Below, piece after piece: positions 43,097 through 55,000 of a stretch of 55,161 nt of DNA (position 1 is the first letter of the stretch; the number at the start of each line of letters is the position of its first letter). The notes under the pieces are model-generated. The model made no database searches, was not told the DNA's origin, and saw nothing but the letters and a program-made list of their open reading frames with translations. Made by a program: the position numbers and the translations under genes. The stretch is from Macrostomum lignano (taxonomy: Eukaryota): NCBI GenBank assembly GCA_002269645.1, contig NIVC01003494.1, forward strand, positions 1 to 55,161. Reading direction: 5' to 3'.

Positions 43097-46000
43097 ATGG
43101 CCAAGCTGAGGCGGCTGGACATCTCGCTTGAGAACGGATTGGGAATCTACAACCCTGGCGATCTGGTCAACGGCCTCGTCTGCGTGGACGTTACTGACAG
43201 CACGGAAGTTCACGGTGAGAGTTTTAACGTGGCTATTTATTTCCCTGATCGTGTTTCAGATGGAAAATCTAGCCAACACATCCCGGATGAAGGAATTGAA
43301 TGGATTGCTAATCTAGCCAGCATCACTGATGAAGGAATAGAATGGATTGCTAATCTAGCCAGCATCACTGATGCAGGAATAGAATGGATTGCTAATCTAG
43401 CCAACACATCACGGATGAAGGAATATAATGGATTGCTAATCTAGCCAGCATCACTGATGCAGGAATAGAATGGATTGCTAATCTAGCCAGCATCACTGAT
43501 GCAGGAATAGAATGGATTGCTAATCTAGCCAACACATCACGGATGAAGGAATATAATGGATTGCTAATCTAGCCAGCATCACTGATGCAGGAATAGAATG
43601 GATTGCTAATCTAGCCAGCATCACTGATGCAGGAATAGAATGGATTGCTAATCTAGCCAGCATCACTGATGCAGGAATAGAATGGATTGCTAATCTAGCC
43701 AACACATCACGGATGAAGGAATATAATGGATTGCTAATCTAGCCAGCATCACTGATGAAGAAATAGAATGGATTGCTAATCTAGCCAATTATCAAGCGCA
43801 CTGAGTAACCCGGATGAAAAGCTGCTGCAGTCCTTAGCTGATCCAATAATCTGCAGGGAATTACAAGCTGATGCCATCATCCTTATGCCACGGATGGGGT
43901 AAAAAGTAGAAAAGTACACAGTAGTAGAAGCTTCAAACTTTGGGAGGGGGAACCCAGATCGTTAACCTATTAGTCAAGGCATTTGGCTTTGACATTTGAA
44001 ATCCAGCAGCACGTAGTAAACGGCGAATCAGGGCTGCGCTCACTCGCAAATGATCCATCAATCATGGATGGCCAATCTAGCTGGTTCGAGTTTAAAAGAC
44101 AACTATTTAGAATAATATTAGATATATAAACGGTTTAACAGAGGCGCAAAATACATTTTAATTTCCACTACCAACAGTTGGTATCGTGTGTGGTCCAGCA
44201 GAGTATAGAAAAAGCCTTGGGAAGATGGGAAAAGACGAGAGAGAGAGAGAGGGGGGTCGAATGGGGGAGATAGAGGCAGTAGGGGATTCCCTGATCGGAC
44301 CAAAGGAAGGGGGGCGAAGCGTGCAGCGAGAAGTGGATCGCGCTCGGACGGGGGAGCCCGGGCAAGAGAAGAGCCAGAGAGAGAGAGAGAGACGAGAGAG
44401 AGAGAGAGAGAGAGAGACGAGAGAGCGCGAGAAAGATAGCAAAATGGCTTAGTTGCCAGGGTTTTTCGAAACGAATGACGGAGTTTATCCAGCCTGGCGC
44501 ATTGCCCAGTTCTGCATTGCCCTGAAAGTGGGGGAGGGAGCTGGGGGAGCTAAAAGAGGGGGCAGGGCAGGGCCGGTGCTGCACTCGAGTGTCTCTGCAG
44601 CTTGGCTGCAAAGAATGCCGCATAATTCAAGCTATACGGTGATGCTGCACCATGCCTAACCGAATCGAGAGAGAGAGTGTGTGTGTGCGTGGGACTTCAG
44701 CCCACCGCATCGCCTGCATGGGAGAGTCTAAAAAAGCGCAACACCCACCCCGCCTCTGAGCCATCGAAATGGGATGTCACCCTGCTAACGGGGGACGATT
44801 TATGCTAGAGAGGTTTTGGGTTTTGTATGGGGCGCGACCCGCCTACCAGGAGTTTATGCACGTTTCGGTTGAAACCGAAGCGCGGTCACTGCATGAGTTC
44901 GGCCATGTATTTTTCATAGGCCGGCAGAATGGGATGGGGAGGGAGGGTTGCTTGATTTCCCAGCAACTGCAGGCTGCTGCAGTGTAGCAACAAATTTATG
45001 GCAGCATACCGAGCCGCTGAGTCAATTAACCACAACAGCATGCATGAGTTCTTAGAGCAAAAACGCATCAAAGTATCTTATAGTATTTTCTGCCTGCCTC
45101 TAATGTTTTACTCTATTTACATGAAAATCATATAGAAAACTGGACGAAAATGCATCAGTAGCGACAGCTTAAATACAAAAACAGCGAAAAAACTACAACT
45201 GGTTCTTAATTGAAGAATCTTTTTGTAAGGAAGCTCAGAAATTGTTATGCTGAAAATGACGATTTACATTTTTTGCAGCTCATGTATACTCAGCAACATC
45301 GAAAAGTCGCCATCACAGAACATTCCGTCTGTGGTCGCCACTTTTAAGAGAGCAAGTAAAGTCTCAATCTTTGCGAGTGACGCAACTCAGCTACGCCGCG
45401 GCAGACTTGAGTTGAGGAATGAAGTGGGGAGCGGTGTGCGAGGGTTGGGCGGATTAAAGCTATTAAAGATATTTCAGAATAGTTTATGAGAAAGCGCTCA
45501 CTGGCTCATAGAGTGGCGAATTTTCAATGTTGCTGAGTATATACGCCCGAAATATACATTTATCTTGCTTCAAAAATCTGACATACTCGCACCTGTAGAA
45601 TAAACAAAATCGATTGCTTGCAAATCTGCTTTGAGCAAAATAATTTGCAGGCGAGGCCATTTGTCGTTGTGGGAACCGAGACATTTAAACAAAATGATAA
45701 ACATTCTTTGTCTGAGACACCCGTTTCCACTTTTCAGTCCCCATCTTCTAAAAAACTTTGAGATTTAGTTTAAATTTTGCAAATGAAAATAGCCTCGCAT
45801 GATGAGAATAATTTGCAGATACCAGTAAAAGCAAAACGCTAATGTATAATGTACAGCATCTGGGTGAATACTTAAAGCAGGAGCTGAAGGACGGATTTGT
45901 TATATCATAACTTTCCGGTTCAATAAGCAAACGGCCGCGCTACTGTCATGGTGCAGTCTCGGTTGTCCAAGCTGATCCACCCTAACAGAGCATTTCGTCA

Positions 46001-52000: not shown

Positions 52001-55000
52001 ATCCTGACCGCTTCATTTCTGCCGATAATTCACTAAAATATTTAAGGAATTTAGCTCCGATTTTTATATATGTCCATCATGTGTGGGCAAAATGTTCTCG
52101 TCGTTTCAAATAATCTACTTAAGAATTTAAAATCGAAAAAAAATATTCCGGGCATTTACCCCATATCTAGACAATATGCCGACGATTCTTGACCTTGAAG
52201 ATCTTGAAGATCTTCAAGAACTTGAAGAAGCGCTTTCAGCTCTTTGCTACCAAGGCTTTTGCAAATCTCAATGGCATGACGCCTCTGCTGCTCAGACACT
52301 TGGTCCCAAAGCAGGCGAGCGGTGGAACGGCGGTCGTAGGCGCAGCTCTGCGCCAGAGGGCACACGGTTGAACTGTCGATTCATCGATATCCGGATTGGC
52401 ACCCGAGCTCAGCAACAGCTTCACTACCGAATCGTGTCCGTTGCATGCAGCCAGCGATAGAGCTGTTTGTCCATCAGTACAGCGAGCCTCAATATTGGCT
52501 TGATAGTCGATGAGGATCTTCACAATATCAACAAAGCCGCCTTCGGCAGCCGCCATGAGAGGTGTGTGACCGTCATCTCTGGCCAGCTCCGAGTCTGCAC
52601 CAAGCCCGATTAGGAGTTCAACAATTTGCCGAAAGTTTGACTGGCACGCCACCCACAGGCAGGATTCTCCGTTGCTTCTGGTCGCGTTGTAATTGCAGCG
52701 AGAGTCAATCAGCAGTTTCACAATTTCGTAGAATCCGTAAGAAGTGGCCGTCCACAGGGCCGTCACGCCCCGAGAATCGGGAATCTCGGGATCGGCTCCC
52801 CCGTCGAGCAGAGTCTGAATGACTTCAATGTGCCCGTTGGCCGCTGCAATCCACAGTCCCGTCACATTGCCGTTTCGCAACTGAGCGTCGAGGTTAGCCT
52901 TCTTCTCGATGAGAACTCTGAGACAGTCTAAACAGACGTTCCTAGACGCGAACCAAACTGCCGTCTGGCCGTCTTTATCAGCATGGTTTACTGAGGCGCC
53001 TGCGTCGACGAGTCTCTTTAATTCCTTGTAATCATTTTTTTCAGCTACTCGAAGTAGTTGTTCGCCTTCAGCGATATAAGGTTTTGATCGGGGATATGCT
53101 GCTCCAGACTCGCACGTGTAATCATGGTCGTGAAAGCTTTTCTACCAGACGTACGAGCGTAAAGATTAGATCGAAAACTCTAAGTGGAACTTGCTGTCAT
53201 GCGTATTTACGTTTCACTCTGAGCACCCGAAGTTTTCTTGCCCTTGCTGCAAAATTCAGTGTACACGCTGCACATGCGCTGTACGCGAGACTGTACTTTG
53301 TGCGTACACTGGTGTGGAAGTCAATTACCCTGTCTTTTAAAATTCGAAAATCAATTTTATTAATAAATAGTGAATTCTATCAAGACCATTGTTTACTTAT
53401 TAAGGCTTTGAATATAGCATGCCGCATTTCAAACCGAAGCGGCTAAAGTAAACTTGTAAGCTTGTAACTTGTATGTAAAATCATATTAAAAGTAAATATT
53501 ATTGGAAGTATGAGGTCCAACTTGGATTTTGATTTATTGAAGCAAAAGCCATTGTACAGCAAATTATAACTTCAAACTCTCGACCACCAGGAAGAAAATC
53601 TACTTAGCGAATAGAAAAATATCTGAAAGTTATGAAGATTCACAACACCGTTGCAGATAATTTTGATGAGAAGTTCAGGCCAGACCCTCACAGTCCTCGT
53701 CATCTCAGCAGATCTGGGAAAGTGCAGGACGTAATTAGCTGCTAAAAGTCATTGCTGATAGTTTACTCTCATCAAAGTTTGGCACGGTTGGCCCCAATGG
53801 GACCCATTGCCTTGGAGAGATGGCCTGGGCAGCCGCCTACGATATCAGGCCTAGTTGTTAGTTCGTAGTTGGTGTCGACACGCCAAGCGACACGCTAAAA
53901 ATCCCTTGTGGGCATCATTTCCTGCTCAGTTTACGGTCTGCCATCTAATTTCTGCATTGCAGGCGGCCGCATGTGGTTCTACGGAAGTGCGGAGACATCG
54001 TGGATCGAGATGACACGCTCCGATGGTCCCGAAACCATATCCGGGCATCAGGTCTTCTTTCAGACGTGCTGCAAACTATTCGGCAAGGGTCAGTTAATGT
54101 GCAGTTTTGATGTGGAAATTTCTAGATTTTCTTCTCATAAAGATTTAAATTGGTTTCTAATTTTAGACTGATAGGAAATCCTGCCCAACAGCCCAAGTGC
54201 CTTAGCTTACTTCTTACTGGAAAAATCTACCATAAAAAGTCCGGCAATGTGCTAACGATAAGGGCAGGAGCACAGTTTGCCTCATTTGAGTGGCTTACTG
54301 GACTCCGTGCTCATTTAGATTATTTTAGACAAAGCGCGTCCATGTCTCCCCAATGGCACTTTTACCCCCACTGTGCACGGACTTGATCCCGCCTGGTTCC
54401 GTTTCTTCAGTGTTTTTAAGTGACACGTTAATCGATTAGGCTCAGGGCTCGGTCTCAATAACTGTGTGGTTTGTTTTCTTCGATTGAGAGCTCCGGCTTG
54501 AGTATTGCTAGCACATTTCGGAGCAAGGGAAGCTTCAGGAAATTGGGACAGAAAAAACTATCCAATATAGGCAGACAAATACGCCAAACTAGAACTACAG
54601 CACACAGTGGAGCTGAACTAGATGCCGTCGAAGTATATGTTGTATTTTGTTTATTGAAGCATAAATTTTGCTTTATTTCTTCCAGACTTTGACGAAAATA
54701 GCGACGGATCCTGCTACACAATCAGTCCCGGTTTCCACCAGTTTCCATTCAAGTTTCAACTGCCAGAAAGGCTGCCTTCATCATTCGAATATTACTCAGA
54801 GACAGGCCGAATCAAGGCGCGCATTACATTCAACGTCAAGGCGGAAGTTGAAAACGCGAAGCGCTCGGCCAGTCATAGTCGGGAGCGAACGATACTAGTT
54901 GTGAATTACTATGACTTGAACGCTCACCGTCATCTTATTGTAAGTGATTCGCCATAATCAGTAATGAGTACGAGCATGATGAAGGAATAGAGCAAATGCT

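Follow-up and report, generated by a model that had tools for sequence, protein, structure and literature searches.

An intact ankyrin-fused cGAS-like receptor gene and its probably decaying, gene-converted tandem twin in the free-living flatworm Macrostomum lignano

Ankyrin-fused cGAS-like receptors (cGLRs) form a large, expanded family in Macrostomum lignano, and an intact member of this family, here termed gene A, resides in a 55,161-nt stretch of contig NIVC01003494.1 (assembly GCA_002269645.1), the whole of which is referred to as the window. Gene A is an intact gene that joins an ankyrin array to a nucleotidyltransferase (NTase) of the cGAS/Mab-21 fold and to a C-terminal domain of ~290 aa. 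Its neighbor on the same strand, gene B, is an ancient tandem paralogue whose ankyrin exon has lately been homogenized with that of gene A by gene conversion, and whose broken reading frame marks it as a probable pseudogene in recent decay. The best joint explanation of these observations, which we regard as probable on balance, is that gene A specifies an intact ankyrin-fused cGLR producing a ligand-gated nucleotide signal and that gene B is its decaying, converted twin.

Gene A occupies three exons, which carry the following elements.

47985..48895, minus strand: exon 1, which from the start codon at 48895 encodes seven ankyrin repeats, a pair of capping helices and a linker; it ends in phase 2, with the donor GT at 47984-47983.
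47518..47885, minus strand: exon 2, the N-terminal half of the NTase core, with LGSFGDG at 47713-47693 (GS) and SDIDF at 47647-47633 (D-x-D).
45900..47431, minus strand: exon 3, with SMDIV at 47387-47373 (the third catalytic Asp), RVSTSILE at 47201-47178, LKSYHAK at 47066-47046, MPHFF at 46910-46896, the Mab-21_C helical lobe, the ~290-aa C-terminal domain and the stop codon.

Removal of the two GT-AG introns, of 99 and 86 nt, leaves an uninterrupted reading frame of 2,811 nt, comprising 936 codons and a stop. A first-pass annotation, made from the sequence, had joined six open reading frame (ORF) fragments into two proteins of ~930 aa; the 936-aa product of gene A stands, while gene B, broken in frame three times, yields no such protein. 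The full-length gene A protein agrees with the public representative P0001, from which it differs at 5 of 936 residues, and its non-ankyrin portion (residues 305-936) matches a 936-aa M. lignano protein, BOX15_Mlig022265g5, at 99% identity along its entire length. Because the residues that straddle the two junctions, ...ACSSL/QPVDM... and ...IKRSV/VSQPA..., are identical in P0001, the exon model matches an independent annotation.

The domain organization of the protein is largely as initially described. Sequence reading places seven ankyrin repeats and a degenerate cap at residues 7-287, consistent with the seven to eight repeats first counted, and Pfam models recover the array in six stretches across residues ~7-235 (Ank_2, E 4.6e-49; Ank, E 6.6e-39). 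The proposed search with Mab-21 and ankyrin profiles succeeded in part: in addition to the ankyrin models, Mab-21_C matches residues 528-617 (28 bits against a curated gathering cutoff of 24.1), and the Pfam NTase-core model PF03281 has no match in the gene A protein. All motifs quoted for the two genes were found in both, namely, LGSFGDG/LGSFCDG, SDIDF, SMDIV/SMDVV, RVSTSILE/RLSTSILE, LKSYHAK, and MPHFF.

cGLRs have been delineated by a sequence motif, h[QT]GS X8-20 [DE]h[DE]h X50-90 h[DE]h, by homology across both lobes, and by predicted fold (Li et al., 2023; PMC9980059), and gene A displays all three. Its active site reads ILGS, 20 residues, DIDF, 54 residues, and MDI, so that both spacings fit the motif; the corresponding elements of gene B are VLGS, DIDF, and MDV. 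Homology was assessed with hmmsearch and hhalign on a trimmed alignment of the family, the uncut alignment being swamped by ankyrin proteins when compared with the PDB. In hhalign, the profile built from 41 members of the family aligns to Sp-cGLR1 over 301 columns (residues 6-339 against 8-375) with a probability of 95.7% and an E value of 8.5e-9, and GS363-364, D385, D387, and D444 of gene A land on the GS, E, D, and D of Sp-cGLR1, as expected of the full catalytic signature that had been claimed. HMMER alone aligns the strand of the third Asp and the helical lobe with Sp-cGLR1, and phmmer against the PDB returns Sp-cGLR1 as its sole match (E 0.014).

The predicted fold conveys the same message. 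An AlphaFold2 model of residues 305-936 has a mean predicted local distance difference test (pLDDT) score of 89.3 and a predicted template modeling (pTM) score of 0.90. When this model is compared with the PDB by Foldseek, the best 50 matches are all cGAS, Sp-cGLR1 (8gjy), Cv-cGLR1 (8gjw), or MB21D2, with a best E value of 3.6e-7, a probability of 1.00, and a target-normalized TM-score of 0.56. The structural comparison with cGAS and cGLR1 suggested at the outset thus points where it was expected to point, and the membership of gene A in the cGAS/Mab-21 family, upheld by profile alignment and by predicted fold, extends to a well-supported assignment as a cGLR.

C-terminal to the NTase, residues ~644-936 of gene A (window 45900-46780) form a conserved helical domain with a few short strands, which at ~290 aa corresponds closely to the ~300-aa helical domain first noted. 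Across the family, an H-P-F motif, a W, and an N in this domain are invariant, and the F that follows the N is nearly so. In the AlphaFold2 model of residues 305-936 the domain packs with the NTase as one globule. It matches no Pfam family, and when modeled alone (AlphaFold2 pLDDT 76) it finds nothing significant in the PDB, the best E value being 0.46 and the TM-score below 0.35. TPR-like and 14-3-3-like matches of the domain were rejected as noise.

Gene A belongs to an extensive family, borne out by a search for further ankyrin-bearing paralogues such as the first-pass annotation had recommended. Searched exhaustively with HMMER, 1.84 billion cluster representatives yield 781 proteins at E <= 1e-3. 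At E < 1e-30 there are 80 clusters (50% identity), many of which extend over the NTase as well as the C-terminal domain. Among the clusters sampled from these top 80, all 12 that bear an organism name come from M. lignano, with one further cluster lacking such a name; the next relatives sampled comprise one annelid protein (Lamellibrachia satsuma) and seven eukaryotic predictions. Of a set of 41 family members, 36 have a Mab-21_C match and 29 have ankyrin repeats. Although these 41 paralogues are only 21-33% identical to gene A, the G, S, and three D residues of the active site are each kept in 37-39 of them. Such retention at this level of divergence argues for selection on catalysis and is the strongest argument at hand for enzymatic activity in the family. 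One of the 41 members has a caspase (Peptidase_C14) match with an E value of 2.7e-25; neither a motif scan nor Pfam models run on six long members located it. Some long models in the family resemble merged gene predictions, for instance P0059 with its EGF and DSL domains.

Genes A and B are arranged head to tail, both on the minus strand, with gene B at 53125-50119. Two other genomic copies of the locus in GCA_002269645.1, L001 and L002, are ~98% identical to the window. The exons of gene B and the lesions within them are as follows.

52160..53125, minus strand: exon 1, ankyrin repeats and linker, with 1-nt deletions at 53073 and 52379.
51704..52032, minus strand: exon 2, the N-terminal half of the NTase, with LGSFCDG at 51908-51888 and SDIDF at 51842-51828.
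50119..51616, minus strand: exon 3, with SMDVV, RLSTSILE, the frameshift at 51272, LKSYHAK, MPHFF, the C-terminal domain and the stop codon.
53073, minus strand: lesion, loss of one G; ATATC-GCTG stands where L001 and L002 have ATATCGGCTG in the three-way alignment.
52379, minus strand: lesion, loss of one C; GAAT-CGAC stands where gene A, as well as the gene B copies of L001 and L002, has GAATCCGAC.
51272, minus strand: lesion, a missing G, AGAA-AGAAG against AGAAGAGAAG.

The four introns of the pair, at 47985/47885 and 47518/47431 in gene A and at 52160/52032 and 51704/51616 in gene B, are all of the GT-AG type and follow phase 2 and then phase 1 in both genes. Conservation of the introns in position and phase, as originally asserted, holds for the phases, for all junctions, and for the position of intron 2, but intron 1 lies ~6 codons apart in the two genes, an offset that falls in the poorly aligned linker.

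In gene B, ungapped tblastn with the gene A protein switches frame at 52377 in exon 1 and between 51273 and 51267 in exon 3. Owing to the deletion at 53073, the ATG at 53125 and the ankyrin repeats are in different frames; the deletion at 52379 brings about a premature stop at 52236, and that at 51272 leads to a stop at 51207 and puts LKSYHAK in another frame than the preceding exon-3 sequence. What was first taken for a tandem pair of intact genes is hence an intact gene beside one that is frame-broken in the window and differently broken in the two other copies. In L002 a base is missing from exon 2 of gene B (window position 51988). In L001 an A is missing at 53041, and exon 3 carries a 2,059-bp insertion (L001 6672-8730; window ~50503), which contains a reverse-transcriptase ORF with YADD, is bounded by a TTCTCTGCC target-site duplication, and has an (AGTA)-rich tail; it is a 5′-truncated fragment of a long interspersed nuclear element (LINE). 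Because the other copies are also broken, each differently and one by a LINE, gene B is probably a recently decaying pseudogene.

Alternatively, gene B could be a functional second ankyrin-fused cGLR, the three frameshifts in the window being base-calling errors of the assembly and the tandem pair being correct after all. Consistent with such errors, all three lesions are single-base deletions, two of them in GG or CC dinucleotides, and all three missing bases are present in both L001 and L002 in the three-way alignment; their restoration yields a clean ORF of 931 aa with every motif, including the catalytic ones, intact. Moreover, codon differences among the three copies of gene B number 32 non-synonymous and 24 synonymous, a ratio below the neutral expectation, which means that gene B lay under constraint until lately or that assembly errors account for some of the 1-nt deletions; the ratio points to an evolution of gene B that is relaxed yet not fully neutral. 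We nevertheless judge a functional gene B to be unlikely. While assembly error is possible for the 1-nt deletions, a LINE insertion with its target-site duplication in exon 3 cannot be a base-calling error, and none of the three copies is intact, the damage differing from one to the next. The adjacent 3.2-kb gene A region contains zero indels across the three copies, and six disabling events fall in the exons of gene B but zero in those of gene A, which are equally long (binomial ~0.016), so that chance is an unlikely cause. Furthermore, no gene model has been called for gene B at either public locus, L001 or L002, and there is no B-like protein among the matches of a protein database search with residues 305-936 of gene A.

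The two genes have had contrasting histories inside and outside the ankyrin exon, where a gene-conversion tract can be traced on both sides.

48047..48789, minus strand: conversion tract, gene A side, ankyrin repeats 2-8 (codons 41-283).
52237..52978, minus strand: conversion tract, gene B side.

Within this tract of 743 bp, the genes are 98.9% identical (blastn) and the number of synonymous substitutions per synonymous site (dS) is 0.011. Outside the ankyrin repeats, protein identity ranges from 23 to 83% in 30-residue windows. Outside the tract, synonymous sites are saturated (proportion of synonymous differences, pS, 0.75-0.85) and the non-synonymous rate (dN) is 0.37-0.56. Saturated synonymous sites combined with such dN values indicate that the duplication is old and that both copies have mostly been under purifying selection since, and the low dS inside the tract, set against saturation elsewhere, identifies a recent gene conversion confined to the ankyrin exon.

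The window is a third genomic copy of the locus, and its ~98% DNA identity to the two public loci applies outside the gene A exons. Within those exons, 7 of 2,811 positions vary among the three copies, 2 of them synonymously, compared with ~1.8% in the introns and flanks of gene A and ~2% in the gene B exons, the latter including the 24 synonymous codons. Homogenization between copies and selection are both possible causes of the low synonymous divergence of gene A.

The gene A protein is already known, and no new kind of system is described here: Li et al. (2023; PMC9980059) catalogued it as a cGLR and included it in their biochemical screen. Five M. lignano cGLRs were cloned for that screen (Table S3), among them sample #90, which is PAA45980.1 (BOX15_Mlig022265g3) and whose construct begins RERSRVQTAAADVV...; this construct corresponds to gene A without its ankyrin domain. 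The same protein has three Ank_2 hits in Table S2. The Note column of Table S3 names 15 active enzymes, such as "09. Sp-cGLR1", and is empty for #90 (PMC9980059). cGLRs fused to ankyrin and TPR domains are described in the main text (PMC9980059), in agreement with the first-pass statement that ankyrin fusions occur among invertebrate cGLRs, and no main-text discussion of the M. lignano genes was found in the literature examined.

Under the account favored here, the gene A protein would be held inactive until a ligand, probably a protein or another molecule that is not a nucleic acid, binds to the ankyrin array and/or the family-specific C-terminal domain. The ligand-bound enzyme would then make a nucleotide second messenger to be read by some receptor. 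The gene structure, the fold, the conservation of the motifs, the size of the family, the lesions of gene B, and the conversion tract are shown by the present analysis, whereas we infer the enzymatic activity, the product, the ankyrin role, and any immune role of gene A; that the ankyrin array might replace nucleic-acid sensing or autoinhibit the enzyme is purely conjectural. Several observations weigh against this account. The Pfam model of the NTase core is silent on gene A, and the strict cGLR pattern fails, solely at the non-catalytic [QT] position before GS, where gene A has L; the active Sp-cGLR1 (KGS) and Cv-cGLR1 (SGS) deviate at the same position (PMC9980059). The ankyrin-less sample #90 does not belong to the 15 enzymes flagged as active when given nucleic-acid ligands (PMC9980059), the substitution ratio of gene B falls short of neutrality, and nothing ties gene A to infection.

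Some of these observations would also be accommodated if gene A encoded a catalytically silent, Mab-21-like scaffold of the kind discussed for MAB21L1/2, one that would make protein contacts through its ankyrin and C-terminal domains and produce no messenger. The absence of its protein from the 15 active enzymes of the published screen, the lack of a match to PF03281, and the presence of MB21D2 among the structural matches are all in line with such a role. However, GS and the three acidic residues persist in 37-39 of the 41 paralogues, which is hard to explain without catalysis. In addition, the screened construct was ankyrin-less and the ligands were nucleic acids only, so its negative result is weak evidence. 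We thus consider a silent scaffold quite unlikely and retain the ligand-gated enzyme as the preferred reading.

If gene A is an active enzyme, its product might still differ from the cyclic dinucleotides that feed STING. It could instead make linear 2′-5′ oligonucleotides in the manner of OAS, emit another nucleotide signal for a receptor other than STING, or nucleotidylate a substrate. Enzymes of the cGAS and OAS types have a common fold, which leaves room for such chemistry, and gene A has an unusually long GS-to-DxD spacer, whose 20 residues are the most that the published range allows, as well as an additional domain at the C-terminus with no match among solved structures. Some cGLR products match no known standard (Li et al., PMC9980059). 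Also compatible with a signal independent of STING, loss of cGAS and STING was reported for Schistosoma mansoni (PMC4117786), and neither was found in Schmidtea mediterranea (PMC13563047), two reports that bear out the first-pass statement of a reported absence of cGAS/STING from model and parasitic flatworms. On the other side, the best 50 structural matches are cGAS, cGLR, or MB21D2, with zero OAS. An activity of this kind is a real possibility, if a somewhat unlikely one, beside the cyclic-dinucleotide synthesis of known cGLRs.

The receptor side was surveyed by searches for STING-domain proteins, using the cyclic-dinucleotide-binding domain of human STING and a seven-sequence STING profile; the best 120 matches are almost all vertebrate, with one from a coral and one from a hemichordate, and weigh neither for nor against a STING homologue in M. 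lignano. M. lignano is not listed in the part of Table S5 (PMC9980059) that was available. By a further step, the ankyrin-fused clade of M. lignano, which comprises no fewer than 80 clusters with 50% identity or less, would represent a lineage-specific radiation of cGLRs that sense proteins instead of nucleic acids and signal through a non-STING receptor, in a phylum otherwise reported to be without cGAS-STING; each member would combine conserved catalytic residues with the ~290-aa C-terminal domain. This extension we hold to be distinctly improbable as it stands.

The remainder of the window contains three other genes and abundant simple repeats.

2233-26734, minus strand: a polybromo-like gene, with four ORFs bearing bromodomain hits, a BAH domain, and introns full of minisatellites.
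30087-31145 and 33157-35255: a PSP-domain gene and a short-chain dehydrogenase/reductase.
49348..49926: a perfect (TACT)x145 microsatellite with 100% matches, which makes up much of the 1.2-kb spacer between genes B and A.

The pair had been put forward as a candidate immune signaling module, a reading that these surroundings do not sustain and that was rejected, the polybromo-like gene, the PSP-domain gene, and the short-chain dehydrogenase being housekeeping genes. At 14514-23444 there is an 8.9-kb array of ~479 copies of the 19-bp satellite AATAGGGATAAATGATGAA, with a GC skew of ~1.0. Since it is flanked by bromodomain-coding ORFs on the minus strand, the array apparently lies within an intron of the polybromo-like gene. 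Many other minisatellites of 15-46 bp are distributed across 500-34,750. Short repeats occur at 38244-38925, both direct (GGTGGTACGCCAAA x2) and inverted (ACCAAGACCACCACAC against TGTGGCGGTCTTGGTA), close to a stretch of low GC content (0.28 at 36-38 kb), and may be a transposon remnant.

Beyond the published catalogue, the present analysis adds that the pair comprises a single intact gene, that the ankyrin exon was recently homogenized between otherwise ancient paralogues, that the C-terminal domain of the family has no structural relative, and that the published negative screen used an ankyrin-less construct. M. lignano keeps and has greatly expanded its cGLRs, while parasitic flatworms and planarians are reported to be without them. 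This expansion makes the species a natural place to ask what role cGLR signaling plays in flatworms and what reads the signal.

Gene A may be compared with known systems at several distances. PAA45980.1 (BOX15_Mlig022265g3/g5) is essentially the same protein, with the same length, exon junctions, and Ank_2 domains. The ankyrin- and TPR-fused cGLRs of corals and other invertebrates resemble gene A in combining a cGLR core with a repeat-type protein-interaction domain (PMC9980059, Figures 1C and 4C); the M. lignano clade differs from them in the predominance of the ankyrin fusion (29 of 41 members sampled) and in a C-terminal domain of its own. MB21D2 and MAB21L1/2 have the same fold as gene A, and MB21D2 (7LT1) is among its structural matches, but they are single-domain proteins with no demonstrated product, to which gene A adds the ankyrin and C-terminal domains and a lineage-specific expansion. 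Among structurally solved enzymes, Sp-cGLR1 (8GJY), Cv-cGLR1 (8GJW), and human and mouse cGAS have, like gene A, a bilobed NTase core with a helical lobe, and share with it the GS, [DE]h[DE]h, and h[DE]h elements as well as the RxSxSxxE, SYHxK, and P-H/N-F/Y-F motifs. Gene A departs from these enzymes in its low identity to them (12-16% in structural alignments), in its 20-residue GS-to-DxD spacer, and in the L that precedes GS, and it alone in this comparison carries an N-terminal ankyrin array and an extra C-terminal domain of ~290 aa.

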